A program made the translations under genes and the position numbers. Shown piece after piece: positions 8,101 through 58,266 of a stretch of 64,000 bases of DNA. Source of the DNA: Penicillus capitatus. Taxonomy: Eukaryota; Plantae; Chlorophyta. The notes beneath the pieces are model-generated. The model searched no databases. It was given only the letters and a program-made list of their open reading frames with translations, and was not told the origin of the DNA. Location: NCBI GenBank assembly GCA_965649825.1, contig OZ287713.1, positions 118,644-182,643 on the forward strand, written 5' to 3'. Each line of letters begins with the position of its first letter. Positions within the stretch are counted from its first letter, which is position 1.

Positions 8101-9492
8101 GTATCGGAATGGCACTGCAGCAATGGTGCTCCTGCATTCCAGATGGCGTCTTGGTCTTCTTTCCGAGTTTTCGCACCATGGACACGCTCTTTGATCGATG
8201 GAAGGTATGCAGCAAACCATCTCCTTCAGATCTCGTAGAAGGGTTCGTAGCAAACTGGGCAGTACAAGAGACTGGAAACGCTCAAAAGAGTTTTCTGCGA
8301 AGAGAGAGCAGGGGGAGAGGACTTTGACGATCTAGTGCAATCGTACTATCGATGCATCGACAATGGCAAAGGGGCGCTTTTCTTTGGCGTCTGTCGTGGA
8401 AAAGTGAGCTATTTGATCTGGGGGAATGATCAGTTTATTCTCGTGCTCCTAGGCATCTGAAGGTATTAACTTTGCTGACGGCTACGCTCGCAGCGTTGTT
8501 ATGATCGGCATTCCCTATCCGGCGGTCATGGATCCCAAGGTCACTCTTTCTCACTCTTTTGTGCGAAAGACACGGGCAGGAGATGGTTAGGTGAAGTTGA
8601 AGAAGGAGTACAATTCGAAGTGGGCGTATCGCCTGGGGCTCTGCGATGGAGGTATCTGGTACAGTCAGCAAGCATTCAGGGCGCTCAATCAAGCCATTGG
8701 CCGATGCATTCGGCACAAGAACGATTTCGGTGCCATTCTTCTGTTGGATTGCCGTTACTCTGAGGCCGGTCGATTGAAGGACGTCTCAAAATGGGTGTCC
8801 TCCGCAATGAGGATAAGCAATGGCTTTGAGCTCATGATGGATTCGGTCAAATCCTTCTTCGCTAGTAACAGCCAAAGAATGCTCAAGCACGAAACGGGAC
8901 CATCGCTCACGACCAAACCGGAAGCCAAAGCCTCTCTGCCATCCCAGGGAGTGCCTGACGAAGATCAGGATTCTAAGAGCAATGTCGCGTCGGCACAGGA
9001 TGTGCATTTGGCTGGAACTCGGGATTGCTCGTTGACGCAGGTCCGACCCCACGAGCCAGAATCCACACTGCAGAAATGCTTGACGGGTTTCGAGCGCCTC
9101 ATCGAGGCGACGAAGGATCGTGATATCGAACTCTTTACTTGTTACATTGCCGAAGCTGGATGCATCGATCGAAATCGGCGAGACCTTGTTGATCAGGTCT
9201 CGTATGCCAATCGATGCTCACGGACTATCGATCTGTGCGTCTTGCTGCGTAGGCTGCCAGAAGATGCATCATGGACTGCCTTTGGCTCTGTGAAGACAAC
9301 GCAGAGAATCTGTCCACCTGGTTGCGAAACTGGCGTCACGTTATACCCACCGGCCTGGCAGCACTGCTTCAGCTGAAGGCCATCGCCACGAACTTCCCCA
9401 TAGATGCCTTGGTTCAAAAATGGAGTCTCACAGGACAGGGTTCTCTCAAGAATGCCTTACAAGTACAGTGTCCCTATCTTTGCTTCCAGTAA
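5148..9492 (+). CDS. FANCJ: FANCJ/BRIP1-like Fe-S DEAH helicase (Rad3/XPD family); many short introns
   Basis: LLEAPTGVGKT (motif I), YATRTHSQL, CPYYLSR, LSPYNYL, IILDEAHNIED (motif II), WCMHAAVSFSQ...ILTSGTLSP, GVLVFFPS, SEGINFAD, GIPYP, QAFRALNQAIGRCIRHKNDFGAILLLD. The segment before ILTSGTL looks closer to FANCJ than RTEL1. Confidence 0.9.
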
Positions 9493-9806
9493 GAGATGAG
9501 CGTGTTGGCCAGGAACTGAGGTTCATGTATGCCGATGCTTTGGGAGTCTCTATAGAAGAGGAGAAGTTCGGGAAGTGAAGCCTTTTTCTCATTCGTGTAT
9601 TAAATGGATGGTTTCAAATAAGCAAGATATGAAAGAGAAAGCGGACTTGGCCTCAGGACACGTGGTAAACTCTTTCGACGATGTGACATGTCGCGGTTGG
9701 AAAACGAACGTCGAACGAGGCACCGGGATGCTTTACTTTGCAGTTTCTTTGCAGCTTCCGCACAGATGCTCATCGTGTGTCCTCCTCGCAAAGAGCCTTT
9801 CCGCGA

Positions 9807-10130
9807 TCATCCGGATCGTCCTATGCCGAACGCCATCGACGCCACGGCGATCCTTCTTTGGGCGATGGATATTTGATACGATTGTTTGATCACAACGGCG
9901 ATCGCGTCGCGGATGTCGCGCTTACTCTATTTGCTTAAGCCTGTTCCTAGGGAGCTTGATAAAATCACCGGGCTCTGTTCAAGGGCTAATACAGAGCGTC
10001 CATGTCTACTTTGCGGACCGTGGACGTGTTCCCAGATGTAAAGTAGTTCATGTCGGTCGAATCTCTTGTGAGAGGCGTTTTCTAGGGCCTCTGTCAGATG
10101 TGACGTACAAGATGATATGCTTCGCATCAT
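9807..10130 (-). CDS. Possible small two-exon hypothetical protein (~95 aa)
   Basis: ATG at 10130. A 42-nt GT-AG segment joins ...LEQSP to SKRDIRDAIAVVIKQ...GRSG*. No homology recognised; could be chance. Confidence 0.2.
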
Positions 10131-10172
10131 TCGTTTGATTTTCGTACAAACCTTTCGGCGGTTTTATCGAAG

Positions 10173-12967
10173 ATGAGCGCAAAAGCAGCAGAGCAACGGA
10201 TAAAGGTGTTGGAGATTCAAAACAAGCGATTGTCGGAGAAAGTGGAAGTTCAGAAGACCGAACTCGCCCAGAGGCAGAAGAGAATCGAGGCGCAAGAAGC
10301 GAGGTGGCGTGACGCACAGGCCGCGGTCTTTGCAGTGCGACGTGGATGGACGCAACTTCACGAAGACATACACGAGATCGCCGACCGCGCTGGCCTTACC
10401 GAGAATCTCGCTGCCTTGACGGAAACGGCGACATTTCTCGATCCGCTTCTGACGAAGCTAACGTCATGGAGTGGCGAACGTACCAACGCGGACGGGGAGA
10501 TGCATGAGGACGACGCACGAACACACGCAGAGGAGATGCAAAAACTAGCGGAAGCGGCGGACGTAGAAATTAAGAACCAAGCGAAGGAGACGGTTGGAGT
10601 GTTGGCGGAGATGGTGACGAAACTGCAGTCCAAGAGAACACCGAGTGTGGAGACGGTAGCGGCGCAAGAAGTCGATGCCATAAAGGCGACGATACGGGCG
10701 ATGCAGGAGAGGGTGCGACTGACGCAAGACACCTTGACGCGACGCGAATCCGAACTGAAAGAGATCCGTTGTCGCTTGTCCGACACGCAATACGATCTGG
10801 AAACAGCTCAACGCAAGATCCTGAGTTACAAGAACAGTATATCCAAAGAGACGACACTATCAAAATCGCAAAGCAAGCATCGCCAATGGAAAGACGCATC
10901 GGAAGGCTTAGGGTTTTGTGCAGGTGTGGGTGGAAAGGAGGAGACAGCTGAGGACCAGGCCGCAAACAAGGCGGTGCAGAATCTGTGTGTGGAGTCCCTC
11001 ATTCGAAGCAAGATTGAAGAATTGGAACGCGAGAGGAAAGAGCATCAGAAGACGCAGAAGGAACTCAGATCTTTGCAATTGGACATGAAGAGCGATTCTT
11101 GGGTAAAAGAGAGCCGACTCTATCAATCCTTACATGAACAGAAGACAAAGCTGATGGCCAAGTTGGAGAACAAGGCAGAAGAGCTGTTGAGGGCCCAGGC
11201 GGCGCTGGAGGCCAAAGATCGGGAGATCTCAAAGAAGCGCAGTCACGATCCAGACGCTCGCCTCCAGAGCTTCACTTTATTGAAAGAGGCTCAGAAGAAG
11301 CTGAAAGAACTGCAGCAGCAGATAATGGAGAATGAAAAGGCGCATCAAAGCCGATCTCCTCCTAGCGTTGACCCATCCACAGCTGAAGAGTACGATCGTC
11401 TGCTGGCCGGTTTCCGACAAGAAGCTGCTCGCCTCAGTAATCGCCTCAAAGACTGTGTGGTACGAATGAGTGATGCCCTGCTTAAGTATGTAATGCATTT
11501 GTGTGACATTTAGTGGGACACAGAGCGTGTGCAGAAAGCACGAAAGGAAGCAGTTGAGGCAGGAAGAAGAATGAGAGCAGCTGAGAACCGCATGGAACGT
11601 CTGAATTCCATCGCCAAGGAGCACGAGGATGTCAAGCGTCAGACTCGTGTTCGCGAGGAGCAGCTATTGGAGAATCGAGATGACTTACAAGTCTACGTGG
11701 ATGTGCTGATGACTTACGACGCCATCAGCAAGAATCGCAGAGAAGCAGATTCCATTGCCCGTGACCGAAACACCGAACGCAAGAATTCCTCCTTGAAGCG
11801 AAAGATTGAGGAATTGGAGAAGACATGCGGAAATGAAGATCTGCAAAAGGACGTGGAGAGTTCACGAAAGCGAATCCGGAGATTGAAAGAGAAGATGGAC
11901 CATCTGCACGTGGAGATGGAGGAGGTGAACCGAACGAACAAACACCAGAAAGAAGACCTGGAACAACAGAAGCAGCTCAATACCTATCTTCAAGAAGAAC
12001 TCGAAGTGAGCAAGATATCCACAAAAGAGTGAGTGATGTGACAGATGGTGTGACTGCAGCAAACAGGAGCGGCTTATGAGAAGTCCCAGATGCAGAATGA
12101 GAAGCTTCTGAAGCAACTGGGGGAGAAAGACAGGGCGATCATACATCTCCGACAAGAGAAAGCGAAGGTGACAAGGCGATTGTGTGAGATCATTGTGTGA
12201 CACGGGGGACTGCTGCAGATCGCAGGACGCGTGGGAGTATTGACATCATTAGCAGAGAATCTGGAAATCAAGGTACGATGGGATGATTCACAATCAGAGG
12301 AGATGTCGAAGATTCGGTCAGAGTATTCAGGAAGACTCGAAGAAACGATCAACGAGATAGCAAGAGTAACAGCACGATGACATTTCTGGCCTCGTATTGA
12401 GATGGTACCTTTAGCTGAAGGAAGAAATGCAACAGCTACAAGAGAAGTTAAATGCGGCGCAGCGTGATACCGAGAAAATTAAAAACAAAAACGAGGAGCT
12501 ACACGATCAAGTTAAGGAAGCCAAACATTCAAAAGAAGAACAGCGAAAAGCAGCCGAAGTTGAAATCGAGCGCTGTGTACGAGAACGTGCCAAGTGTCGA
12601 AAGATGGAAGCTGATGTGAAGGTATCTCTTCCCCACCGCGTCCATCTCCCTCCCTATCGTTCTCTGTGCTCGAATGGAGCAGGCTTTGGAAGATCTGAAG
12701 CGAAAACTGCGATCGGGGACACTGAAGAAATCAGACGTGCATCAAGAGCAAGAGATGGAGATGTTGAATCAGGAAGTGGAGAGCTTACGTAATACATTGA
12801 CCTGCAGCATTTGCTCAACGCGACGCAAATCTGTCGTTCTGATGAAGTGCCTACATACCTTCTGCAAACCGTGTATCGAAAACAGGATCGACACGCGCAG
12901 TCGACGCTGTCCTGGTTGTGGTTCGGCCTTTAGCCGTGAAGACGTTCGAGACTTCTTTCTCACATGA
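10173..12967 (+). CDS. HUB1: E3 ubiquitin ligase BRE1/HUB1 (histone H2B monoubiquitination)
   Basis: Long coiled coil ending in a C-terminal C3HC4 RING (CSICSTRRKSVVLMKCLHTFCKPCIENRIDTRSRRCPGC). TGAAYEKSQMQNEKLLKQL resembles the BRE1 pre-RING motif. Confidence 0.9.
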
Positions 12968-17566: not shown

Positions 17567-19952
17567 AAAGACTTCCATTAGCATCTCTCGCGCGTGTGAT
17601 GTCGCACAGATTATGTTTGAATGTTTTCAAGGGTGATCTCTTTCGGTTAGACGGCAGTCGGCATAGGTTAGAAAGGGCCATTGGTAGAAATCCTCATGTT
17701 CTCCGTTTAAGAGAGTGAATGACGGCGATTCCCCCGGAATAAGACGATGCTGGGCGTTGCGTACAGCAATTTCTTCTACCAAAAGGTCCTCAAGGGCAAT
17801 CAAGAAGTCAGATCGCTAGCCTGAAGTCATCTCGAAATGTCGATTGTGACGCCATTGGCATTGATGATGATTTTACTCCGTTAAGTATTATCATTACACG
17901 TCAGCGGAATCGGTAATTGTAAGAAGTTAGTACACCGGCAGCTAGAGAGCAACCATCGCAACTGTTGACGATCCTGTCGGCAAGATAGTGATGGGACGGC
18001 GTCATCCTGGAGTCATGATGGATCGGAGGGGGGGTAAATCAATTGAGGGGACTGTCTGGCTGGCGATGGGTGCACGCCGCCAAGGGGCACTCAGGGTCTT
18101 GTCAGCGAAGGTTCCAGGTGCAGGGGGGGTCTTGGTTCTCTGGTTCTGGGCGATGGATGAGTCACCAGTTTCGCGGGTCACATCGGTCGAATGGTTTAAA
18201 TGGGGGAAGAACGTTTGGAATAGGAGCTTGGTTTTCTGTAAGCAAGTTTACAGTTTGGGTATCAGACTTCGGTCAGCCTGGCAGACGACGACGAACACTC
18301 CTCGGTGTCTCACGCGACCGTTCCATATCCACCGTTGTACAGGAATCCGCCTTTCCTAGCGGCGCTCGGTTTCTTTCGCGAAGGGGAGCGCCAGAGCATC
18401 GACGCCACCGACCTATTCCAGCGGGGCGCCGACCAGGTGGTTCATAACGCCGAGCTGTGCGATTCTCGGCGTAGCTCAGTTCAAGAAGACCGACAAGGGC
18501 TCGTGGGAGAGGCCGGCCCGTCCAGTCAACTAGAAGAGGGAGGGAACCAGGCACCCTCTCAACCAGACAGCGGCGCTTCAAGAAGTTCTACACGGCAAAG
18601 CCGACAGATCCAATAACTAAAGGGCTCAAAGCCAACGAGAGCGAATGGTGGATAGCCTTCATGGAACATCCAAATAACCATCTGATAGTTGCATGCGAAC
18701 TCGCGATACATTTCCTGACAGTTAGAAGCTGCAGTTACGATTTCCTAACCACCCCAAGTATTAAAGCCTAGTAAATATTTCGCGTTATTCTGTCGTATTT
18801 GCTTGCGTTTCTCCGCCGTTGTTGGTAACGAGTTCGATTTCACACTTTCTTCTTTTTGTTACGAGATTCCACAAAACCGTCTTACTCATTTTCTTCGTTA
18901 CTTGTAGATTGTCAACAAAACACGCATGGAATACAAATAGTGTCGCGCTCTCGTGTGGGTGTCACACCGTCTGCCTCGTTTTCTCGGGGTTTCATCCCAG
19001 GGGCCGCTTACTAAGGATTACCGACTGTCAGAGGTGTTTTCTCTGGTTCTAAGAGTTGAATTGCTCACGTGTCTTGTGAAGTCTTGTCACATCAAGCACA
19101 TAAATCTGTAAAACCGAACCGTTAGACATCTTTTTCTGTAGACTCGAAAAGTCTTACGCTGCATACCTCTCTCTCCCGCGGGACAAATAGCATGTGGTTT
19201 TTCATCCATTGCGTCACGACGTACATTTCTTTCCACTGGCACTACGCTGGTATCATCCGACTAGAGGGTGTTTTAGAATTTCCGCGATAAGCTGCCGTTT
19301 AAGCCAAACTACAAAGAAGATGCTTATTGAGCAGCCATCGCCGGTAAAAAGTGCCTTAGGGTGTATCAAGGACGAAACTACATGTTTCGAACGAGCATTG
19401 ACGTCATCATAACGTTATGCAAAAAGAAGCGTTATAAAAGGGGGGTTTGTTTCGAACTGCTGTTTATCTGTAAGGAAAAGTCTGTTCAGTTTTTTCACAT
19501 TTGCTCGTGTCACTATCCTTCAGAATTGTTGGAAATGACATATTTCGAAAAGCAAGTAACGAACAGCGATGCGTGTGGATCATCACAAGTTTCTCTTAGT
19601 GCAAAAATGAGAACTCTAACGGACATTCTAAACTCAGCAGAGGACACGTGGTAGTTTCGCTGTCATACCATCAATACCTACGTATGCAAACTCTTGTTGT
19701 AGTCATCTTTGCCTTGCTGTCTTTGTCGTCCATTCTGATTTTCTTCGACTCTACAGGGCAATGAGCATTAGGTTCGTTACATGCTTTACAATAAGCGCAT
19801 TCCAATGAGACGAAATTGCGTCTACAGACTCAAGAAAGCAATGTAGAGTAAGCGGGCTATCAGCTGACACATACTTGTTATTTTCAAAGAACATTAGTTC
19901 CTTCACACGTTGGACAACACACTATCAACTGCATCAATAAAAATCTACAAAA

Positions 19953-20512
19953 ATGGTAACCGCAAAGCAGTGCTCACGAGAAACAGGTCGACGAAGGACG
20001 CACAACGAGCGTCTTTCTTCGACGTCTCTACAGAGTAGTCGGAATCGACTGTCGCGGTTCTACCTCGATGATCAGGTCAATTGGGTTCTAAAAGCTTTGA
20101 GGAGACGAATAACATAGCTCCTCGACAGAAACAACAGCTGCTGTTACGATGGCGGACTCTGTGCCATCCTTAAGGTATGTAGAACACGCTTGCTTTGGTT
20201 TTCTCGACAAGGATCTTCTCAGAGTCTTCGTCTGCAAAAGCACTCGTCAAGGAACGATTCGAAACTGATGCAGCCTTCTAACCAAACGCGCACTCACTTA
20301 AAGAACTCAGACTTCATCTAGGCACCCAATGCCATCGACTGCCACGAACACTCTCTATCGGTAAACTAGGTGCGCGTAAGAAGCTACTGGTAAAGCTGCT
20401 GCGGTTGTCAGGAGAGGATAAAGAGAACAGCGTCACATCTCAGCGTCCATCTGACAGAATGACACGGATGCTTCCTATCCTTAAAGAAGGATACGTGCCT
20501 CTTCAAGCGTAA
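19953..20512 (+). CDS. Possible multi-exon hypothetical protein or decayed gene
   Basis: ATG at 19953 with GT-AG-bounded segments of ~40 nt. A final open stretch GARKKLLVKLLRL...GYVPLQA* follows, but I could not join the middle cleanly. Confidence 0.2.
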
Positions 20513-20829
20513 ACGTAATATAAGAAACACATGGAGTCCATCGCAGCGCGTTTTCGCATCGAAAGAGTCCACCCTGTTTCTCCTGATTGTGTTTTAGAGA
20601 TGCACACAATTGATGCATTGTACTTTAGATCAGTGCTCATACAGAATTGGTCAAGTACCAGTAAAACAGGAGAAACTGCTATCACCATCCGTTTTGTTAC
20701 ATAAACCAGACAGATCCAACAGGTAACGTGCAAAATCATTGCATCAGAGCCATCGTGAGTCGACACCTAAAGCACCGAAGCGCCTCTTATGAACCACAGA
20801 CTCTGACGATGCACACAATCTGAGGACGC

Positions 20830-21630
20830 TTAATCGAAAGCCCATTGATTCTCCCGGCGAACTTCCTCCTCCTCTTCTGGTGTAAAATCATTCTAGACGA
20901 CAAACACCGACCGCTCTAAGATGCCAACCACTCCACATACATCTCATATACCTTGATGTTGAATGTCCTGCGGATTTCTTCCGGCGACTTGCCTGCGTCC
21001 ATTATCCATATGTGAGAAAACATGAGAGGCGGAGAATCATTTACCCTTGATCAGATAGGCGACGGTCTGACAGCAGAGATCCAGTAGTGGTGCGATGTTT
21101 AAGTAGTTGGCCGCCTGTCACACAGTTCTCACACTTTTGAACCCCACAGCATCCCATGCTTACCAAAATGAGATCATACAGAGTACTCTGATCGACACGC
21201 ATGTACTCGTTGTCGAAGCTCTTGATTTCCTCATCGCTTTTTCGTGGTTTGTCATCATCGTCCTTTGTCTCGGCCTCGACATGGAACGTGCAGTACTCGA
21301 GAACCTTGGACAGAACGTTGCCTGCATCCAGAATGCACCCTTATGTCCCGTGCCCTAGATGCAGGGTGGATATTCACCTTTAACGTTACACAGAGGCACA
21401 CTCTGGTTCTCAACGTCCTCGATGTCTACACAACGACTCACGTTAGGCATCCATCTTTACACCTCGGAGATGGCTGACCGTTCAGCATCTTCGCTATCAT
21501 TTCGCTCTGGACGGCGACTTCTCGGGGAACTTCGAAAGTAGTCTGGTCGGAAGAGACCAACGTAATCGTCTGCACAAAAACGCTCTGCGCAAAGCGAGGG
21601 CGACAAGCGGCTTGCCGTTTTGTCTTCCAT
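20830..21630 (-). CDS. SKP1: SKP1 (SCF ubiquitin ligase subunit); 7 exons
   Basis: [96 protein letters not shown]. Confidence 0.98.
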
Positions 21631-26126: not shown

Positions 26127-28068
<1,942 letters not shown>

Positions 28069-28269: not shown

Positions 28270-29300
28270 TGCCTCCCTTTTCAGTCCACATGGGACGCTC
28301 CGTACCGTGCAGCCACACGAGGCCGGAGGAGATTCTGGTCGGATTGTGGATATTTATCTCGTAAGGTCACTCTTTTTGTTCTCCGCTCAGTGAAGTGACC
28401 TGAGGCGAGGGGAGATTGGGAAAAGGCCATTGCGTCTGCCGAAACGCATGCGAGAACGAAGTTGCCGCTGATCTATTATGCGTTAGGCCAGAAGCACGAT
28501 CTCGAAGGCAACGACCAAGCGGCCATTCACGCATACGAGAGAGCTCGTGTGCAAATCGACGAGATTCCGCGATGTTGCTCAGCGTCGGCAAGAGATCGGA
28601 GCTTGACTCGTACGTTCGCCAAGCCGGTCGGTCTAACGACACCGTAGCTTTAATGACGAACCCGACTTCTCCGTCTCTGCAGATCACCGTGAGCTGTGAA
28701 TATGGTGGGGACGGTATTGCGCCCATATGGGGTGCATTGACGAGGCGCTTGCCGCCTTTCCGACGGCAGACATCGTTCTTTCGGCGACAAAACTCTATCG
28801 GTATCATGTAGCGAGTCAGCCAAAGATGCAAAGCCGCTTCTCGCTTCTGGTGCAGGGGCTCTCGGAACACCCTTAATAACGATCGCACACGAAAAAGCAG
28901 ACAAGGCATCCTTGTTCTACCTCGCACGGCAATACGCATCACTGGGACACATAGACATGGCCATAGAACTGTTCACAGAAGCGGGATTCGTTGACAACGC
29001 GTTCGACAATCTGTTACGACACTTAAAGATGGAGGCGACGCATATTGAGACATCTGGTCATGACAAACGCACGAGACAATGCGTTGTACGCACTCATGTC
29101 TCAGACTAAAGATGCCGACTACGGGACCATCGACCCTTACCTTCTGAGACATTAGACTTGAGCGAAAACGTAGATCTCTGAGAAAATCATATGGTTCTAT
29201 ATGCTGGCCGATGCGCAACCACCTTTAGCGAGATTTCACGCAACGCAGGCGGCAAACAGAATCAGATGGTTACAGGTAACAAACCATACACCGTTGCTTA
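28270..29300 (+). pseudogene. IFT140: IFT140 (IFT-A complex, TPR region) pseudogene fragment
   Basis: GDWEKAIASAETHARTKLPLIYYALGQKHDLEGNDQAAIHAYERAR...EIPR-frameshift-MLL...ELDSYV; L*IWWGRYC (TGA at 28697); ASLFYLARQYASLG...AIELFTEAG. Collinear with IFT140 (EVPRML...LELYV, LWRWWAQYLES, ASYHLARQYES) as I recall it. Confidence 0.8.
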
Positions 29301-29552
29301 TCTGTATCACAGATACTCTTGCGTGATGATCTCAAGAGACGACAAGAGAGAACTGACTGAAGTAAACACAAATGCGATGTATTGGCTAAAGCCCATTTTG
29401 AAGATCCGTGATTCAGATGCATCTGATTCCACAACTGCCAATGGCTGTCTGTTTACATCCGTGTTAGACAGAGAGAACATCAATGCTGCTGCTCTGACGT
29501 CGGTCCAGTTGATAGCCTCTTGACTTGGGTATGTGCACTATCCTTTATCAAT

Positions 29553-31927
29553 TTAAAATGGCGATCGTTCCTGGTAGTCATCCTCTTCTATGAAAGCGAA
29601 GTCTGCGTTCTCATTCTCATCTTCATCGTCGGAAGACGTTTCTGCTCGAGGGTTGCGTTTCTTGCTTCCCGGCTGCCGTCGAAGCGTCTCTCTGCCCAAC
29701 ACGAGTTCGAGGACTTCGGTAATGGTCGAACACTCATGAACAATCATATCCGATTGCTTTGGTATCTTGATGCCTCGTGTCGTGCGCGGTACCACAGCCT
29801 AGAACGCAGGCATCGCGATAGTGGGAGGCAATCTTTGTTGCACAAGCTTGATGCCGAGTTGCGAAATTGAAGCGATGCGCTTTTCCAACTGTTCGACATC
29901 TCGAAGCTCGCCGGCCAGACCGAGCTCCCCGATCAGCGCCATGTCTTGACTCTACAAGACACGTTTCCTTATCGCGAAATGTATGGGCGTTACGACAATG
30001 GGCTGATCGAAGTAGGCGGAGGCAACAGCGACAGCAACGGCAAGATCTCCAGCCGGTTCTCTGAGTCGCACACCGCTGGTGACATTTGTCAAGACGTTCA
30101 CACGTTCCAGTTTCATCCGAACGTGACGTCTCAGAATAGCAATGATGGTGTAGAGGCGTGCAGAATCGATGTTGGATTTGTAAGGAATCATCGGGTCTTT
30201 TCGGTGTCGTATGGCGGTGCACAGTGCTTGGACCTCGAGCAACATTGGCCGAGAGCCTTCCATCACCACGGCAAAGGAAGAGGACACTCCCGTCGGCATC
30301 GTCACGCGATTGCGCAGCAACGCAGCACTGGAGTCACACACTTCGGATCAGTTGGATCATCTTGAATGGGTCAGTCGGATATACTTGGGATCCTCGACGG
30401 CTCGATGACGCCCATCTGACATTTCGAAGATGCCGATCTCGTCCGTCGCACCTGGAGCGAATATGGCGGCGAACAAACGAGAGACTTAAGGGTCAGACCG
30501 TAACGGTTTTTGAGGCCTCTGAGGATTCGATAAGATTTGTTGGATTTTCCTTCCCCCTCGAGGTAGAGAACGACATCGACGATGTGCTCCAACACCTTCG
30601 GCCCTGCGAGAGATCCTGCCATCACAGAGAGATGTCACATCATGGCTGGCTTCTCATCGAGCATTGCCGACCCTCTTTGGTGACATGACCGACGATGAAG
30701 ATCGGAATGCCTGTTGCTTTGGCGCACTGACTGAAGATCACTCCACACTCGCGGACCTAGTGCTTAGCTGTCACATCAACTCAGTCTGTAAAGATCTTGC
30801 CTGTTTGAAGCCTCCAGGACTGCCTTCGACGCCAGCGGCCATAACGGACTGGATGGAGTCCATGATCACGGCACTCGGTTTCCTCTTTTTGATTTCGTCT
30901 AAGATATTCTGTACGGAATCCTATCGGAAGCAATTGGGTCGCGAACAAGCATTCCTACGTCGATCGATGTCTCCGTAATGACGTACAGCGTTGCGAGATC
31001 GCCAAATCCCAGCCGCAGAGCCCGATCATAAATCTGCCCTTCGCTCTCCTCCCCTGCACAACTCACTCTTACTATTGAAAAACTCGAATCCTCTTTTCAA
31101 ATACCCGATGCATAGAGTACTGTTTTCTGTGCGGTTGCCTTCCCGTTTGATGACGGGCCTTGACTCTCCTTTTGCTTCGCAATAAGAGCTGCCATCTGCA
31201 AGGCGGCCATCTCGATGGGTTGAGTGAAAAGACTGCTGAGAAGCCTGAAGCAGAAGAGTGCTCTTTCCCACCCCTGGATCACCTCCGATCAGAATCAAGG
31301 TCCCATTGACGATACCGCCTCCTAACACTCGAGCCACCTCCGTTCCTGTACGTTCGTCCATCTCTGGTGTCGCCAAGAGTCATCTGTCCACGACCAGACC
31401 TGTTTTGCCTGGAAGTGTAATACGTTGCATCCGTGTCCCTCGGTCGAGTCCGATCTCTGCCAACGATCTCGCCACCCCTGTACATCATCGCCATCTACTG
31501 CTGTATGCGAGGGATCTCTTTATGTCACACTTGTCGATTGCACCCATGCATTGCCTCGAGCACGAATGGCAGCAGATTCTGTCACGCCATTCTCCAGAGC
31601 CATTGCTGACATCTGTTCAAAGGCATTGCTCGAATTCAGCGGAGCGACCTTGTGCACCACAGTCTCTACTAAACTGCCCGACGCACATAATTTCTGTCTC
31701 TCTTAGAAAAGATAGATATCGACTTACGTTTCTCGTTCGCCACAGAAATGGCAGAGACCGTCGTAGACGGGATGATCTCGGCCGCACTCTGAACAGCGAA
31801 ACACCTTTTTCGGTTTGCTGGTGGCGTCGACGCGGATCCCCAACGTTCGTGCCCATCGCGGCGACGCTGTTCGTGCCGGCAATGACGACGTCGATCGAAA
31901 AGCGACGCGCAAACGATTTAACATCAT
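29553..31927 (-). CDS. radA: RadA/Sms DNA repair protein (organellar, bacterial type)
   Basis: Zn ribbon CSECG...[113 protein letters not shown]. Confidence 0.95.
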
Positions 31928-33380: not shown

Positions 33381-34462
33381 ATGGAGATCGGAGACGAAGG
33401 AACCTTTGAAGGGAGGGTCAGACACCGCATGTCCGGAATGCGGCTGTCGCAGGAAGACACGAACAGTTTTCCCGTTCCGCGTCTCGTTCAGCTCAAACGT
33501 GAAATGGAGACGGAGCCTTTGAACTTCCCTCCATGTTGGTTCGAAGGCTTCACGCATTCGTGTTTAGCTATGACTTCGAGGCCATCACTCCTCGGGGTGA
33601 ATTCGTCTTCGGAACATCAGCACGAAGACGCCACTCTTGCGGATTCCCATTCGAACAACACACATTCTGGCATGCATTTCTCGACCTCTAAGACTGCTCT
33701 TCTGATGGGACGTGTGATGTAGACTCGAGTGGACAGTGGTGCAAAGCTCCTGTTCGTGAAAGCGGGGAAACGAAGACGACTTCCACTCTCACGTGAGTGC
33801 CGATCAGAAAGAGAGCCATGATGTGACAGGTGTTGTTTGACAGTCGAGGTCCAGGGGTGCACGTGGTGAATGGCGTTGTCCGTTATCGTGGCGTCCGTCA
33901 TCGTCCGTGGGGCAAATTCGCAGCAGAGATTCGAGATCCGAGTCAGAGACAACGCGTCTGGCTCGGGACATTTGATACGGCAGAAGAAGCAGCATTGGCT
34001 TACGACGCTGCCGCACGCAAGATTCGTGGCAGCAGAGCTGTCTGCAATTTCAAGCAAAGCACGTCACATCACCTCTTTGGACCGTCACATCGACAGATGT
34101 GTGTTCGTCGTGCAGATGATTCACCATCTACCACTTCACCGCGCAGACAAGAGATGGCGAAATCGGTTGGGGCACGGTTCGCGGGGGTAGCGGGGACAAG
34201 ACGCCGAAATAAGAAAGCGCGTTTGGAGGTGGAAGAAGGTGAAGGCTCATGGACAGGTCATCACTATCCGCAACAAAAGACGATGATAAGAGACGAAAGT
34301 GCCACATCGTCCAGAACGACGAACTGCAGCACAACGAGTCGCCATGCGACGTTTCTCGGATCTCCACGCGATCGAAAGCTGCTGCGTAAAATCTTTGAAG
34401 ACGTGGATCTGTTTGAATCCGCTTCCGCTTTATTGATGCTGCGCGACTCTTCTCGCGCTTGA
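33381..34462 (+). CDS. AP2/ERF transcription factor with a C-terminal LLML motif; 3 or more exons
   Basis: [55 protein letters not shown]. Upstream exons join via a GC-AG intron (33670-33722) and a GT-AG intron. Confidence 0.95.
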
Positions 34463-37400
34463 CGTCTGTCGGTCGGTCGGATGACGATGATCATCATAAA
34501 GGATTGTGTATCTTCTTTATTGAATTAGTCCTCCTCCGCCACTCTCTCAGTCGATCATAATTTTTGAGATTTGCATTCTCGGTGAAGAAAAAACCGCGAG
34601 AATGACGGTCTTGGCTTCAAAACCACATGAAAAATGTGGATTGTACATACATCTAATGTGTCCCGCTCATCGCGAGAATACTCACTCCCGGGCACATTTA
34701 ATAAATGCCGTGAGTCAGAGCACTCATGTGAGCATGTGTGTTTTGTTTTCAGTGTCACCTCCACAGGTGCTAGGGACTAGGCATTCCGCGGTACTTCAAT
34801 GTGGCAAGTAGCTGAATACTCTTTGTTGGCAGCTTGTTTGTCGCTGTCGATTATTGCGAGGCGATATGGAGAAAATTACAATCTTGAAATGTGCTCGTGA
34901 CTATGTACCTCGAGCTTCTGTGCTTCATCCTTGTTCTGCTTGTTCGGCCTCTTAACTGAATGCTTAACAAGTAAAACTAGGGCTGAATAGTACTATTAAG
35001 CTATCCATTCGTGATCGCATATGGACGTTAGTGTTGTCGCGATCCGCGACTTTTGCGTTGCAAGGTGTTTTACTTTCATAGCGGCATGCAGATGTACGAA
35101 ACACACGGACTCGGACAAATGAAATTGTTTCATACCTCCTTTGTCCCTTGGCAGTCATTCTTCTTGTCTTTACAGTGAGAATCGCTCTCTCTATGCCGTT
35201 TAAAAGGTACAGTCAATTTTCCCTTTCTCCGGGAGCAAATGATGTATTACCTTTGCTTAAAATAACTCGCCTTTGGAAAGAGAAGTGAATTCTGCCAATA
35301 AATCTATTCGCCGCAAAGGGATATAGTCTTGAAGGATTTCCATTGTTGCACAAGGATCTTCGAGAACGCTTCCAATTTTCTTTCAATTCATTCTTCTGCC
35401 AAAACTGTGAAATGTGTTCGCTGGGCTTCCGAGTAACGCGTGATGTTTCTTCCTTCTCGGACCAACAATAATGCATACACACTTTGTAAGGAGCGTGTTC
35501 TGAAGCTGGTTGGAATCTAGGAACATTTCCTAAAACTTGAGTTCATTCTTCGCTTGTAACGAATATCAAAGTGACAATGTCTTTAAGAAAACATGATTCG
35601 TTGGACTTCACTTTAAGTTCTCTCTTCGCGATCGTAAAGAGATCTTTGCTCAGCCAGGATCCACTCCAATGAAGGAATGCTTTTGTCTTTGTATTACGCC
35701 GCAAATTCGAAGCCACGTCAGCCATAAACGTTCCTTCTCTTCTTCACATGTTTTGTCTTTGGGCGTGATGAGACCGAGGATAAGCAGAGTGAGTCATGGA
35801 CGTCTCGGAGCTAGAATACAAAGCAGAAGAACGTCATTAGTTACAAAAGTGGCTATGACGTCTCTAATCGTCAAGTGTCACGTTCCGATGCGTTGGCATA
35901 TATAAAATGCAGCAGGTAGAAGGTTCTAGTGCTAATTCTGGGAATCTTGGGCTTGTGCGTAACAGTTAAAGAGATCCCAACACCATCACTTGGGAAAGAA
36001 CGGTACTTGATCCTTAAGGCAATCATCGTTCCTAATGCTCTCCACCTTCAATCGCAAGGTCTTTCTATGTGCCGTTAAGTCTTCCTACGTCTTTTGTTTT
36101 TACGTTTTTGACGTCTTTTTTCAATCCCAAGTACTTTCGCTTTCTTCGTTTGAGCCTTCTTTTGCATTCCTTGTTTCGTCAAATGCCTTTTTCAAATCCA
36201 AGATACGAAAAAAAAAACATAACATTAAATGTTAATCGACTACTGTCTTCTTCGAGATGCGCTCTGTAATGTAATGACAACAAGGCTCTTAATGCATTAA
36301 TATCAAAACATAGGAAGTTTCTTCCTTCTTCCTTATTTCCTAGTGGTCTCGCGAGTTTTTGATCGCTCTAGTCATACACGACAATTGTCTACAAAATCAA
36401 ACAACTCGTTCGAAAGTTTAAGATGTTAGGTGGATAACCCTCATCTAACCTTCAAGCGCTGTGCAGCACATGACGGATGCTTTGCGTGCATTGGCAACAA
36501 CTCATCAGACTTCTTTGTCAATGGCTGCTTAATGAGCTTTAGGTTGCTTTCTTGACCGGCATCAATGTCAAACCCCCTTCTATACCTTCATCTCGTCTTC
36601 TTCGATCCAGCATGGTAAACGGTGATGTCAATGCTTTGTGTTAGATTCTCAGATGTGTAGTTCTCTCACCGCTCTCTCCTAGACTTATTTAGAAATTCTT
36701 CCCAGTTGTGTGGATTCAAGTGCATAACAGTACTTTGAGGAATTTCTGAACAGTTTTAGATGTAGTGGTATAACTTATTCAAAGGATTCAATTCCTGAAA
36801 AGTGACTGCTTGAAGAAAAACGGCCTCACTTATCCCAAAAAACAAACCAGTATGAAAAGGAACATCTTCTGCATTGTTACAGCAATAACTTGGATTCCAG
36901 TTCAAAGCATCGATATTTAAAGCTAAGTGGGCTTCCATGCTAAACGAAAAGACATTGCACACGATGATGCCTAACGTCGCATACATTTCCACCTCAATAA
37001 AGAATTGATTTTAAACCAATTGTCGAAATTTGAAGGCATATTGTCGCCATAATGAAACGTATACGAATAGCATTCAGCATAAGTTGTTTTCAATGACGAC
37101 TGCTACAAATTTTTCTTGCCAAACGATGTCCACAGATCAATCTTTGGGTATGTCACGCTCTCGTGTGACTGTCCCATCGTCTGCCTCGTTGATCGAGGGT
37201 GCTGTCTCCGAAGGGGCGCACTTACATGAGGTTTACGTCAACCCATGAGTCCTTTCCCGTGGTCCTGATGGACAGGTGACTCATCTGTCATGTCACCGGT
37301 GGCGTACAAATACACGAACGTGGACCCATGTATACCTTTGCTCTGTAAGAATTATAAAGTCTTCCGCTGGCAATCTCTAAAGCGCGGCGCGTCTCTCCCG

Positions 37401-38600
37401 CGTGACAGGGTAATGGCACGCAACTTGGCAATTTGGTATGTCTTTTTTGAAACTTGGCTCGGCTTTCAACTCTTTTCTAGCAGAATGTTGCGAAGAGGGA
37501 CGTAAGATGACGAATTGATAAACAATCATTATCTTAAGAATGTCAGTCAAACAATGTTGTCTTCGACAAGGGGTCATGTCATTCTGTCTTGTGATGAAGG
37601 GGTTCATCGCGCAGAGAGACACTGATGACTCATCTGAGGCGTGTTTCTGTGGTGTTTGAACCTGTCTCGATGAGTCACATCAATTTTCGTGTATAAATGT
37701 GCGACTCTGAACTTTGAAATGCTTCTGCTCCGAGCCTGTAAAAGACTTCCGCTGCATTGATCGTTCGAGCGGCCCGGCCCGATACAACAACAGTCGTGTA
37801 AGACTCTCTTTGATGTGCTCTTTGACTTCCTCGATACTCTTGTTGGTTGAGAACGTCATTACAATGTCCTTGGTTGCACCATTTTTGACAATTTCATGAT
37901 CCAGCTCGGCTGCAGATTATAATCGTTACCGCACTTTAGCATAGCCTCAAAAGTTTGTCGTTAAGCATTCTATGTAGTCCACATATAACGCCAAATCGCA
38001 TATGAACAATTAAATATGCTTACCCGCGTTGCATAGAATTCTCAAGCAGTATGACCCACACTCGAGTGGAACTAAAGAAGTAATTTTAACGGTTCATAGG
38101 TTTGTTAGTTATTTGAAGTACGGTGACGATTGTGGCGTCCGTTTCACGAGGAGTGTTTAAAAGCGTGAAACAAAAACGGACAAGTACTACGAATGTCTCG
38201 TGTGTCTTTAACGTGAAAGTCGCCTCCTCTCAACAATCCAAGTGCGAGAAAAGCAGAAGCGAAACCTAGTGATACTGGCGTCTACTTACGAATGTTTTCT
38301 CGAAAACATAATTGACTTCTAACTACGATTATATGCCGCACAAGCATACACACCGCATTCGGCACCTCAGTTGATGTGAAGTAAAACGAAGTGACATGGT
38401 GACGCGACACGCAGCTGTCGCTATCAAACAAACGTTGCTTGGGTCGACGTCATGCAAGACAACCTTGCGAATCGTATGTTATGTAAAACACGCGTACGAG
38501 ATGCGATGCGAGTTCTGCATCGGTCACATCAACATCCTTCCATTTCAAACTCGTTATCGCGTTTTTAATCCCTGAACTCGTTCCCTGCACGTTGAGCGTC

Positions 38601-39452
38601 ATGGCTGACCGTTTGCACCTTCCCATCAGCAACAAAAAACGTCAGTCCATTCGCGTTTTCTCTAACGTCGGCGACGTTGTTATGCGCAGTCGAGGACATT
38701 CTAATGTGGCGCGATGCGCGTCTGTCGGGAAGTATATTTGGCGGTTTCACTGTCGGGTACCTTGTCCTCGAGTGGAGTTCTCTCTCCATTTTCTGCCTCG
38801 CCGCCTACGCATTGCTCACCATAATTGGCGGCCTGCTCGTGTGGCACTATGCAGCACCTTTTGTGAAAATGTAACGCGGCGCGACGCATCCATAAAAGAT
38901 ATGTCACCCTTGTTATGCGCGACAGGAACCCTCCCATCCCCTCTTTCATTCAAGACGGCCTCTCCGAGGAAGAAGTGAAAAAACAAGTCGAGAAACTTCT
39001 GCCTAAAGTCAACGAAGTCCTTGGTGAGTAAAAAACTGATCGAAGCATTGATCATGAACAATGTGATGCTGTGCAGCAATGGTCCGTCGTGTCATCAGCG
39101 GTCAAGATCTCATGCTCTCTGCCAAAGTCGGCCACTCGTTCAATCGTTCTGCTGATAGATGACATGCAGGTGTTGGGTGGACTGTATGTGGTGGCGCGAA
39201 TCACATCCATTTTCTCACTCTTGACGCTGACCTACCTGGGTAATGAAAGGCATGAAGATGGCATAGGGCAATATGTATACTCTAGGTGTTTTGGTGGCGT
39301 TCTTGGCACCAAAGGTGTATGAGATGCGCAAAGATGAAATCGACGGATACTTGGAAGTGGCTAAAGAGAAGCTCAAAGTTTTCTACAAACAGCTGGAGTC
39401 CTCACTGAAGAAGATTCCTAGTGCCAAACGTGTGACAAAGAAAACGGAATAA
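38601..39452 (+). CDS. Reticulon (RTNLB) family protein; 6 exons
   Basis: EDILMWRD, two long hydrophobic hairpins, and LTLTYLG...F..PKVYEMRKDEIDGY. Confidence 0.9.
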
Positions 39453-43560: not shown

Positions 43561-45269
43561 ATGTCATTATCCCGCAGCGAAGCACGGCGTCTCTTTGGAT
43601 TCGTCCACGAAATGCTGCAGAAACGTGCCTATCTCCTGATGCTCTTTCTCGCATTGACGCACTTCGGTACGCTTTGTCAGACGTCATACAGCCGCGTGCA
43701 AAGTACTTCTGATCAGGGTGGGGTCTCATAGGGGGATTTATCCCAACCCTGTCCACGCGTTACTTTGTCTCAGAACAGACGGACGAGGAGGATTCGTGTG
43801 TTGGTCAGTCGGATGGACTGGATCCAGAGGACAGCATCTGCAAACAAGCACATAATCTGGCAGTCTTCTTTGATGCCGGGAAGCTCTTTGTCTCGCGGCT
43901 CTTTCTGTCGATCGTCTTCGGCTCATACATCCACCGATACAGCACGATCTATGGCCGCAAGCCGTTTCTCCTACTCGCACTGCTCAATGCACTGATCCCG
44001 CCACTCCTCCTCCTTCTCCACCTTCAAGCAAATATGCCATTCTACTGGTGAGCGTTCCGGTGAGGACACCTATTAGACATGAGGTGTGTCCGGGTATGCA
44101 GGTTCTATGTTGGCAAAGCGTGGGAAATGTCTTTCGCTTTGCCTTCTCTCTGCCATTGGTACTTCACCGACCTCATCGACGAGTCATCCGCAGATATGGT
44201 GTACTGGGCATATCTCATTCTGGCTGCTTTCTCTTCTTTCTTGGGATCGATGCTGGTGGCCAGCAAAGCGATAGAGGATGCACTGCACGCAGTCATTATC
44301 TTGTTGGTATTGATCAGCGTGGCATTGCTGCTCAGTTTTGTTTTTCTGCCGGAATCTGTTACGCCATCTGCCAGTCTGAATAGCCTCTTAGCAGCTGGCG
44401 ATGTGCACAACAATCTCAGTCGGGCGTCATATCTCTACTGGATTCGCCCCTTCGAAGACATGTACGCCTCCTTTCGGCTTCTGCCGAGAAAGGCTAACTT
44501 GACCTACGTGATCCTGGTCTATGCGGTTTTCGAACTGATCCAACAGAGAGATTCTGAGCTGGAGCTACAGTACCTTCAAGAAGTCGCAGAATTCAGTACA
44601 GTGGAGCAATCAACCTACCTTATGGTTCGTTTCTTGGTCGCCACTTGTGTCTACAGCATCATCTTTCCTTTCTGGAGCCTTTTCAGCAATCGCACATACA
44701 AAGATGCTTTTGGATTCGGATTCGTCATGGTGGCAGTGAAGCTGTTTGGCATGATCTTCGTGACGTCCAAGAAGCTGGCCTATTTCCTTGAGATGTTTGG
44801 GGCTATGGACGCCTTGATCACTGTGATGATCGATCGCGTTCTCGATCACCACTGTACCGCCTCGACTTCCCCCTCCGTCCATCAAGCCGTGTTAGGGATT
44901 CGTTCCTTGGCCCAAGGACTCTCCCCTCTTTTTCATGCTTCCGTCTTCGCGCTCTTCCGTCTCGGAGGGCTCTACTTTCCCGGAGCTCCTTTCGTTTCGC
45001 TTTTCGCTCTGGCTCTTGTGGGACTGTTGCTTTTGCTGAATATTCGTGTGGAACAGTACGGGTTCGTTACGCCAGTTTCCATCTTTCTGCGCATCGTCAC
45101 ACTGACTTTTCATTCAGATGACGAAGATCTGGAGAATTGCATCAACTTGCCGGTATCTGGCAGGGGATATGTCTCGGAAGAGGATTCGAATAACTCCTCG
45201 TCAACAACCGCTACATCCGCCGATGAAGATGAGCCATCGATGCTCCCAGCAGAGGATCGTTTCGATTGA
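43561..45269 (+). CDS. MFS transporter (HIAT1/tetracycline-efflux-like)
   Basis: Multiple TM segments, YGRKPFLL (MFS motif A region), QAVLGIRSLAQGLSPLFH...FPGAPF, and an acidic C-terminal tail. Confidence 0.8.
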
Positions 45270-45554
45270 GGGCACTTCTGTTCTGTACAGCAGAGACAGC
45301 AACGCATTGAAAGGCATCCCCCTTCAGAGAGCACGGGTTGCTTAGATCTTACACTTTCACATCATAATCATAGTTTGGCGCTTAAGCATTTTGTGCATCG
45401 TTGTGTTCTCGGGAGTTCGTCAGGAGACAAAGAACATCTTCTATGAACATTAGATAGGCAGAGACATAGATATACACATCGAAAACAGTCTCTGTCAAAT
45501 CACCACGAGTATGTGTGGCAATGAAGATGGAAATGTAAAGCATCAGTACTACAT

Positions 45555-55576: not shown

Positions 55577-55637
55577 CTTCGAACACCGCTGCCACGGCGA
55601 ATGGTTCCGTCAATAAATACGATGACTGTCCCATCGT

Positions 55638-55710
55638 GACAGTCCATTTGTAAGCGCGACAATCCATTTGTAAGCGTGACAGTCCATTTGTAAGCATGAC
55701 AGTCGATTTG
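55638..55710. repeat. Tandem 20-bp repeat, ~3.5 copies, consensus GACAGTCCATTTGTAAGCRY
   Basis: gacagtccatttgtaagcgc / gacaatccatttgtaagcgt / gacagtccatttgtaagcat / gacagtcgatttg, with no spacers. Confidence 0.9.
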
Positions 55711-57669: not shown

Positions 57670-58175
57670 ATGGGGAACAAGAAAAACAAACAGCGCCGTC
57701 GAAGGGAGTTCGAATCTCGTCACGTGGATCAGCTTTGGCGAGATGTTCGCAAACCTCCGACGGACGTCGTTTCCGGCACCACCGGACCGATCGGCACGAC
57801 CGACAAGTACCGACGCAACGCACGCGCTCGTTCCTCACGTTCTCGTGTCCAGAGCCAAACTGGACGAAGACATCCCGGGCAGCGGCAAACACTACTGCAT
57901 CCCCTGCGGGTTCTCCTCCAGTCCACTCAATGCTTATTTTTCACAGACCTCTCGACGCTGTTCTTGACAGACGTTATTTCACCGACGGGGAGAGCCTTTC
58001 GCGTCACGAGACATCCAAACTTCACAAGAAACGCGTCAAGCTTCTGAGACATGGCATCCCTCCGCACGACAGCGCCGCCGCCGGCGAGGCTGCCGGGAAG
58101 GGACCTGTCGACAATGGCCCACGACTTCGTCCGCATCGCACCGTCACACCGTCCACGCATTTAACAGCCACCTAA
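57670..58175 (+). CDS. BUD20: BUD20/ZNF593 C2H2 zinc-finger pre-60S factor; 3 exons
   Basis: RHVDQLWRD, LDEDIPGSGKHYCIPCGRYF.....L.RHETSKLHKKRVK.L...PH...EAAG.G. Confidence 0.92.
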
Positions 58176-58266
58176 CTTCGCAAACACATCACCGTTTCCT
58201 TCGTCGACCAGGCGAGTCGTCACACGAACAGTCGCCATCCTCAAATGTCCGTCGTACGGTGGTGAC

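Follow-up and report, generated by a model that had tools for sequence, protein, structure and literature searches.

A probable pseudogene of an already truncated IFT140 gene and its open counterpart in a sister species

Positions 28308-29406 on the plus strand of the window (the whole stretch of DNA analysed here, 64 kb, or 64,000 nt) very probably hold a dead, non-processed pseudogene of an IFT140 gene that had already been reduced to its C-terminal half, and this relic would still occupy the ancestral position of the gene. IFT140 takes part in building cilia, and its product is a core subunit of IFT-A. The window consists of eukaryotic DNA in which GT-AG introns are short (~50 nt) and G+C is ~52%. 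The affinities of its acetyl-CoA carboxylase and of the IFT140 sequence suggest that the relic's lineage is a divergent chlorophyte green alga.

Two related sequences were compared with the window. The only match in a first protein search was P0001, a 297-aa open reading frame on a 1.23-Mb contig (ENA ERZ26696514 ctg303796). The contig carries the sister-species locus (L001), which is syntenic with the window and ~86% identical to it. P0018, which an exhaustive HMMER search found in addition, is an out-of-frame open reading frame over the relic interval in another ENA sample. Its contig (L002, ENA ERZ25074695) was assembled independently and comes from the window's own species; it is 99.2% identical to window positions 18122-38603 over 20.5 kb and fully syntenic there (DAHP synthase, relic, radA, AP2). 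Identity to L001 is 86% through 5.8 kb, 82.6% in the first relic block and 77.9% in the second. Our inspection covered the 64 kb of the window genome and, in L001, ~10 kb to either side of the gene.

The relic and its neighbours

A first-pass annotation of the window had placed a decaying IFT140 gene in a gap of ~1.4 kb between a DAHP synthase gene and radA. Profile matches confirm the identities of both neighbours, and the gap measures 1,484 bp (stop codon 28066-28068 to stop codon 29553-29555). The annotation gave the interval as 28270-29300; the relic is indeed there, but it extends slightly further in the 3' direction, to 29406. The features of the locus are as follows.

26127..28068, plus strand: upstream class-II DAHP synthase gene, intact (Pfam PF01474, DAHP_synth_2); stop codon TGA at 28066-28068
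28308..28342, plus strand: 5' leader remnant of the truncated IFT140-C gene, from a three-way alignment (~69% identical to L001 9890-9924, ungapped); the left edge, 28307/28308, is the junction of a ~620-bp deletion relative to L001 9270-9889
28343..28360, plus strand: exon 1 remnant; start codon lost (ATG in L001, ATT in the window and L002)
28361..28404, plus strand: intron 1 remnant; GT..AG kept, with a private 4-nt deletion in L002
28405..28630, plus strand: exon 2 remnant (AGGDWEKAI...EIPR/MLLSVGKRSEL...); window-private 1-nt deletion at 28571/28572, and CGA>TGA in the same codon in L002
28631..28682, plus strand: intron 2 remnant; GT..AG kept
28683..28807, plus strand: exon 3 remnant (DHREL-stop-IWWGRYCAHMG...); window-private TGA at 28697-28699, and two private 1-nt deletions in L002 opposite 28769 and 28789
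28808..28855, plus strand: intron 3 remnant; GT..AG kept
28856..29001, plus strand: exon 4 remnant (...KASLFYLARQYASLGHIDMAIELF...); -1 and +3 indels common to L002, frameshifted relative to exon 3
29002..29047, plus strand: intron 4 remnant; donor and acceptor contexts altered (acceptor AG changed to TG), common to L002
29048..29143, plus strand: exon 5 remnant, the first 96 of 141 nt; 29143/29144 is the junction of a 747-bp deletion common to L002
29144..29275, plus strand: exon 9 remnant, the last 134 nt of the exon (...TLDLSENVDL-stop...ARFHAT...), with indels and out-of-frame stops; weak profile match at 980-1008
29276..29336, plus strand: intron 9 remnant; GT..AG kept
29337..29406, plus strand: exon 10 remnant, with indels; homology to L001 stops here, at a synteny break
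29553..31376, minus strand: downstream RadA/Sms-like gene (TIGR00416), with exons seen to at least 31376; stop codon 29553-29555

The relic is IFT140-derived. Over 28343-29406 it is collinear with the C-terminal TPR region of the protein (Chlamydomonas residues ~822-983), as the annotation had recognized. Our query consisted of the pieces at 28402-29106 from a three-frame translation, with an X for each frame break or stop and no repair. These pieces match Chlamydomonas IFT140 (PDB 8bda_G) at residues 826-983 of 1409 (E=7.8e-18), with weaker matches to the Tetrahymena (E=2e-12) and human (E=2e-9) proteins. They also match Pfam PF24762 (TPR_IF140-IFT172) at positions 96-258 of 486, across the frame breaks (E=2.4e-24). 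The exhaustive search supplied two Pfam-verified, full-length reference IFT140s, P0023 (1351 aa) and P0027 (1449 aa). When these were aligned by tblastn, only residues ~870-1040 mapped on the window and on L002; on L001 the alignment is collinear from ~870 to ~1380. With a profile built from the references, the window covers positions 593-756 and, faintly, 980-1008, and L001 covers 593-1098 of 1143.

The N-terminal part of IFT140 is missing throughout. Tblastn with P0023 and P0027 detected neither of the two beta-propellers (PF23383 and PF23385) in the window, L001 or L002. When six-frame translations of these three sequences were searched with the profile, the best E for the propeller part (below position 590) was 0.35, which is noise. 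Compared with known IFT140s (Chlamydomonas 8bda_G; human 8fgw_E and 8bbf_B; Tetrahymena 8hme_D), the likeness therefore lies in a collinear C-terminal TPR solenoid, best matched by the green-algal protein, and the copies of both species lack the two propellers and begin only ~90 positions into the TPR domain. The window copy differs further in its stops, its frameshifts and its two large losses: the 747-bp deletion, which took 177 codons, runs from within exon 5 through exons 6-8 and 44 nt into exon 9, and exons 11-13 (~165 codons, including TPR_IF140_C, PF24760) are absent after 29406, where radA follows.

The remaining content of the window can be described briefly. An AP2-domain gene lies at 33830-34462 on the plus strand (Pfam PF00847), and to us it has the look of a plant AP2/ERF gene; it is a further pointer to the green lineage. 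The region 58000-64000 has a GC content of 0.60-0.64 and encodes a homomeric (multidomain) acetyl-CoA carboxylase, with overlapping spurious open reading frames in all frames; the best named relatives of its exon at 62458-63918 are from Volvox africanus and Picochlorum (~52%), with a land plant at 39%. Long coiled-coil open reading frames at 10116-12029 on the plus strand (rich in E, A, L, K and R, with no Pfam match) cause the strong purine skew at 10-13 kb. Otherwise only housekeeping genes are present: P-type ATPase, mitochondrial carriers, sugar transporter, XPD-like helicase and thymidylate kinase, together with PRA1, BTB, kinase, RING, rhomboid and ML-domain proteins. No Rfam family reaches its gathering score across the whole 64 kb. 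A 20-nt tandem repeat is present in 3.8 copies at 55635-55710 (CGTGACAGTCCATTTGTAAG), and the tandem-repeat scan adds nothing on the relic.

The sister-species gene

In the sister species the same position is occupied by an open gene.

L001 9925-12355: IFT140 C-half gene, manual model; open frame of 604 codons in 13 exons, stop codon 12353-12355

Its 12 introns measure 40-77 nt; 11 are GT-AG and one is GC-AG (11073-11123), the latter followed by a 19-nt micro-exon (11124-11142). The model was made by hand, and the choice of splice sites can hide small frameshifts but not in-frame stops, of which there are none. The predicted protein matches Chlamydomonas IFT140 at residues 822-1369 in one stretch (E=2e-88), Pfam PF24762 at positions 92-486 (E=6e-79), PF24760 at 2-123 of 124 (E=1e-23) and the reference-built profile at positions 590-1125 (E=3e-125).

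The sister gene is thus modelled as the TPR half of IFT140. A six-frame profile search found no propeller half within 10 kb of it. Moreover, the DAHP synthase gene ends ~900 bp upstream of the L001 ATG, so that the ~820 N-terminal codons cannot sit at this locus. We rejected the ~90 open codons 5' of that ATG as a further piece of IFT140 (the resemblance was of 'ASQCVKGKDD' to the IFT140 motif 'MCVKTRRLDV'), because the profile alignment starts at VYLAGGDW and the sequence upstream scores nothing.

The relic and the sister gene are at orthologous positions: DAHP synthase lies directly upstream of the IFT140 locus in the window, L002 and L001, and the flanks are collinear, with 86% identity to L001. 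The first-pass annotation had called the relic an in-place unitary pseudogene. Much of that description stands, as the relic is in place, non-processed, intron-bearing, derived from IFT140 and syntenic with L001. The part that is not supported is the idea that a full-length IFT140 decayed here. The gene that decayed would have been TPR-only; the sister frame covers Chlamydomonas residues 822-1369 and nothing before them.

The two loci also differ in their surroundings. L001 9270-9889 is a 620-bp block found in the sister species only, with a 92-aa open reading frame on the minus strand (9445-9723) that has no Pfam match; we had guessed that it might encode an ACBP-like protein and dropped the idea. 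The loss of this block in the window and in L002 also takes the 5' region of the IFT140-C gene. Downstream of IFT140-C there is a protein kinase gene in L001 and radA in the window. A rearrangement is seen in addition: window 44347-45285 corresponds to L001 1-939, a sequence that precedes the relic position by ~9 kb in L001 but follows the relic by ~16 kb in the window.

Lesions, polymorphism and constraint

The window copy has no uninterrupted reading frame with a start codon. It retains introns alongside its disabling lesions and so has no retrocopy character; GT..AG is kept in introns 1, 2, 3 and 9, in agreement with the introns reported by the annotation. The two lesions that the annotation had singled out are both real. 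At 28571/28572 the window reads CCGCG-ATG, L001 reads CCGCGAATG (EIPRML, intact in one frame) and L002 reads CCGTGAATG, with CGA>TGA and no deletion, so that two independent lesions have hit one codon within one species. At 28697-28699 the window has TGA and both L001 and L002 have TGG; the residue is Trp in human IFT140 and Ile in the Chlamydomonas protein. We ruled out that TGA is read as Trp, because the DAHP synthase gene ends ...GWQF-TGA at 28066-28068 and TGA is therefore a true stop. The further frameshifts that the annotation had described are likewise present, as the -1/+3 pair in exon 4 and as indels in exons 9 and 10, next to the altered splice sites of intron 4.

Comparison with L002 separates older from younger damage. 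Common to both sequences of the species are ATG>ATT at 28343, the exon-4 indel pair, the intron-4 sites, the 747-bp deletion, the exon 9 and 10 indels, the loss past 29406 and the missing 620-bp block upstream. The 1-nt deletion and the TGA are private to the window haplotype and other lesions are private to L002, which indicates that decay is still going on.

The relic is also unusually variable within the species. The window and L002 differ by 25 substitutions in its 1,099 bp (2.27%), as against 0.63% over the other 19.4 kb, a 3.6-fold excess (Fisher p=3e-7), and 5 of the 7 indel events between the two sequences fall in the relic (p=8e-6). Such an excess of substitutions and indels is the signature of unconstrained drift. 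Along the alignment as a whole, window-L002 differences are very patchy, rising from zero in 18122-21121 and 36122-38603 to ~1.5% at 22-25 kb and 2.3% within the relic, which suggests recombination or haplotype blocks.

Between species, we calculated dN/dS on BLAST-supported blocks only (258 codons in the L001 frame). For the relic against L001, dS=0.32, dN=0.136 and omega=0.43 (bootstrap 0.27-0.66); for the DAHP synthase control (366 codons), dS=0.47 and omega=0.036. The relic omega is below 1 yet well above that of the control, which fits a history in which one lineage was constrained and the other was relaxed for part of the time, although a pairwise omega from two species does not separate the lineages. 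The relic thus evolves as expected of neutral sequence in its polymorphism, its indels and its relaxed omega. A relative-rate comparison at outgroup-conserved sites points to the window lineage as the relaxed one: there are 11-12 changes in that lineage and 2-4 in L001 (chi2 4.0-6.2, with the same result for L002), small counts that correspond to p ~0.01-0.05.

In simulation, only 0.03% of neutral 604-codon frames remained open after 0.16 substitutions per site, even with indels and splice sites ignored. We infer that the propeller-less IFT140-C gene, as modelled, has been kept by selection in the sister species. If omega under constraint is taken as 0.05-0.25, the pairwise value of 0.43 means that the window copy may have been unconstrained for something like half of the period since the split or longer, a very rough figure with a wide interval.

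Competing explanations, order of events and meaning

Could the gene in fact be intact, and the lesions errors of sequencing or assembly? Single-base indels are typical of long-read error, but we regard this explanation as hardly conceivable. L002, which comes from another sample, shares the loss of the start codon, the exon-4 frameshift, the 747-bp deletion and the 3' truncation, and differs in its private lesions; TGG>TGA is a substitution and not an indel error; and across 1,098 bp of DAHP synthase exon core the two assemblies differ by 6 substitutions and 0 indels. The annotation had likewise argued against a noisy assembly. We also think it very unlikely that the relic is a dead partial duplicate, that is, that an IFT140 still intact elsewhere in the genome gave rise, before the two species separated, to a copy of its 3' half that landed between DAHP synthase and its downstream neighbour and is now decaying. 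This would account for the presence of only the C-terminal ~40% of the gene at the locus in both species. However, the sister copy has stayed open over a dS of ~0.3-0.5 and has evolved more slowly than the window copy, and a dead copy would need repeated gene conversion to do so. Nor did the exhaustive HMMER search with the sister frame fragment find a second close relative in any genome sampled: the strong matches were P0001 and P0018 alone and the weak ones came from other green algae, although this is a weak test that relies on gene calls on metagenome contigs. The weak fragment matches P0019-P0030 were considered as candidate paralogues and rejected: P0019, a gene with long introns, comes from another green alga (GCA_002284615.2), and the remaining ones are pieces of ordinary IFT140s. 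A JGI metagenome scan gave no further members of the clade, only distant IFT140s (22-40% identity).

The remaining alternative is that a full-length, canonical IFT140 decayed here recently and that the relic records a recent loss of flagella, as the annotation had concluded. In a variant of this explanation the ancestor had split IFT140 in two, with the propeller half elsewhere; the sister would still be flagellate and the window species would just have lost its flagella. We know of no described split IFT140 gene. The lesions are young and still polymorphic, the sister C-half is conserved as if it still did an IFT140-like job, and syntenic flagellar remnants, compaction and lost synteny are the pattern of flagellar loss in Hyaloperonospora (PMC3471859). 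Against this, neither the 64-kb window nor the 10 kb on either side of the sister gene yielded propeller-coding DNA, the window contains no other ciliary gene family, and a single 620-bp deletion from a sister-like, already truncated ancestor explains the 5' junction in the window. We consider a recent loss of full-length IFT140 unlikely. The relic by itself neither demonstrates nor dates a recent loss of flagella, since the loss of ~820 codons would precede the species split.

In the explanation we favour, the death of an already truncated gene, the age of the truncation is read from that 5' junction. One 620-bp deletion turns the sister arrangement into that of the window, with both flanks of the junction aligning, which puts the truncation before the split (dS ~0.3-0.5). 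Independent N-terminal losses in the two lineages would need coincident breakpoints, and by the parsimony of this one deletion junction in the aligned sequences the ancestor would already have been truncated. Loss of canonical IFT-A function at the locus is thus probably older than the species split.

The order of events can be reconstructed from the observed homology, the lesions and their shared or private status, the synteny, the modelled sister frame and the rate asymmetry; like the expression and function of the sister gene and the reason that constraint was lost, it is what we infer from them. Before the split, the ancestor's gene would already have been without its N-terminal ~820 codons, which encode both beta-propellers and the initial TPRs, and the remnant would have lived on under purifying selection as a TPR-only gene of ~600 codons, 'IFT140-C'. 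In the window lineage, constraint would have dropped after the split from L001, most likely because the residual role of the TPR half became dispensable. The common lesions would then have built up: the 620-bp 5' deletion, ATG>ATT, the exon-4 frameshift, the damaged intron-4 splice sites, the 747-bp deletion and the 3' truncation. Some of the damage, in the form of small indels and nonsense mutations such as the 1-nt deletion and the TGA, would still be segregating.

Two known cases bear on this history. The non-flagellate downy mildew Hyaloperonospora arabidopsidis keeps remnants of flagellar genes, IFT172 among them, between the genes at syntenic sites; these regions are locally compacted and lose synteny more often (Judelson et al. 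2012, PMC3471859). Our relic resembles these in being a degraded IFT gene in a compact syntenic gap (~1.5 kb), with a synteny break at its 3' end, that was found by way of a sister taxon. It differs in that it comes from what we take to be a green alga and that its sister gene is a TPR half, whereas the sister Phytophthora is flagellate and has a full-length gene. In Klebsormidium nitens, an alga whose vegetative state has no flagella, IFT components are retained according to a 2026 preprint, IFT140 has an altered length and domain organization, and non-ciliary roles have been argued (bioRxiv 10.64898/2026.02.05.698958). The likeness is that parts of IFT-A may persist in non-ciliary roles, which a propeller-less IFT140-C in the sister species would fit; the differences are that K. 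nitens still makes flagellate zoospores and has no described TPR-only truncation or later pseudogenization.

Direct genomic evidence of how and when eukaryotic lineages gave up flagella is scarce, and relics of ciliary genes belong to it; the present relic is unusually well resolved, with lesions exon by exon, two haplotypes and a sister species. Taken as a plain pseudogene, it is an ordinary case of a phenomenon already described in oomycetes. A decayed IFT140 fragment alone cannot date the loss of flagella; in this case the propeller half would have gone long before the remainder.

The part that could be new is the conserved, propeller-less sister gene, which lies outside the window and is represented by one modelled sequence. 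We tentatively suggest that the sister and the ancestor carry a selectively maintained, stand-alone gene for the TPR half of IFT140, either repurposed for work outside the cilium or one half of a split IFT140, and that the window may preserve its later death. If so, the two species would form a natural presence/absence pair in which to ask what an isolated IFT140 TPR solenoid does, and if the TPR-only sister gene is real and expressed, it would bear on non-ciliary or modular functions of IFT-A in organisms that have no cilia.
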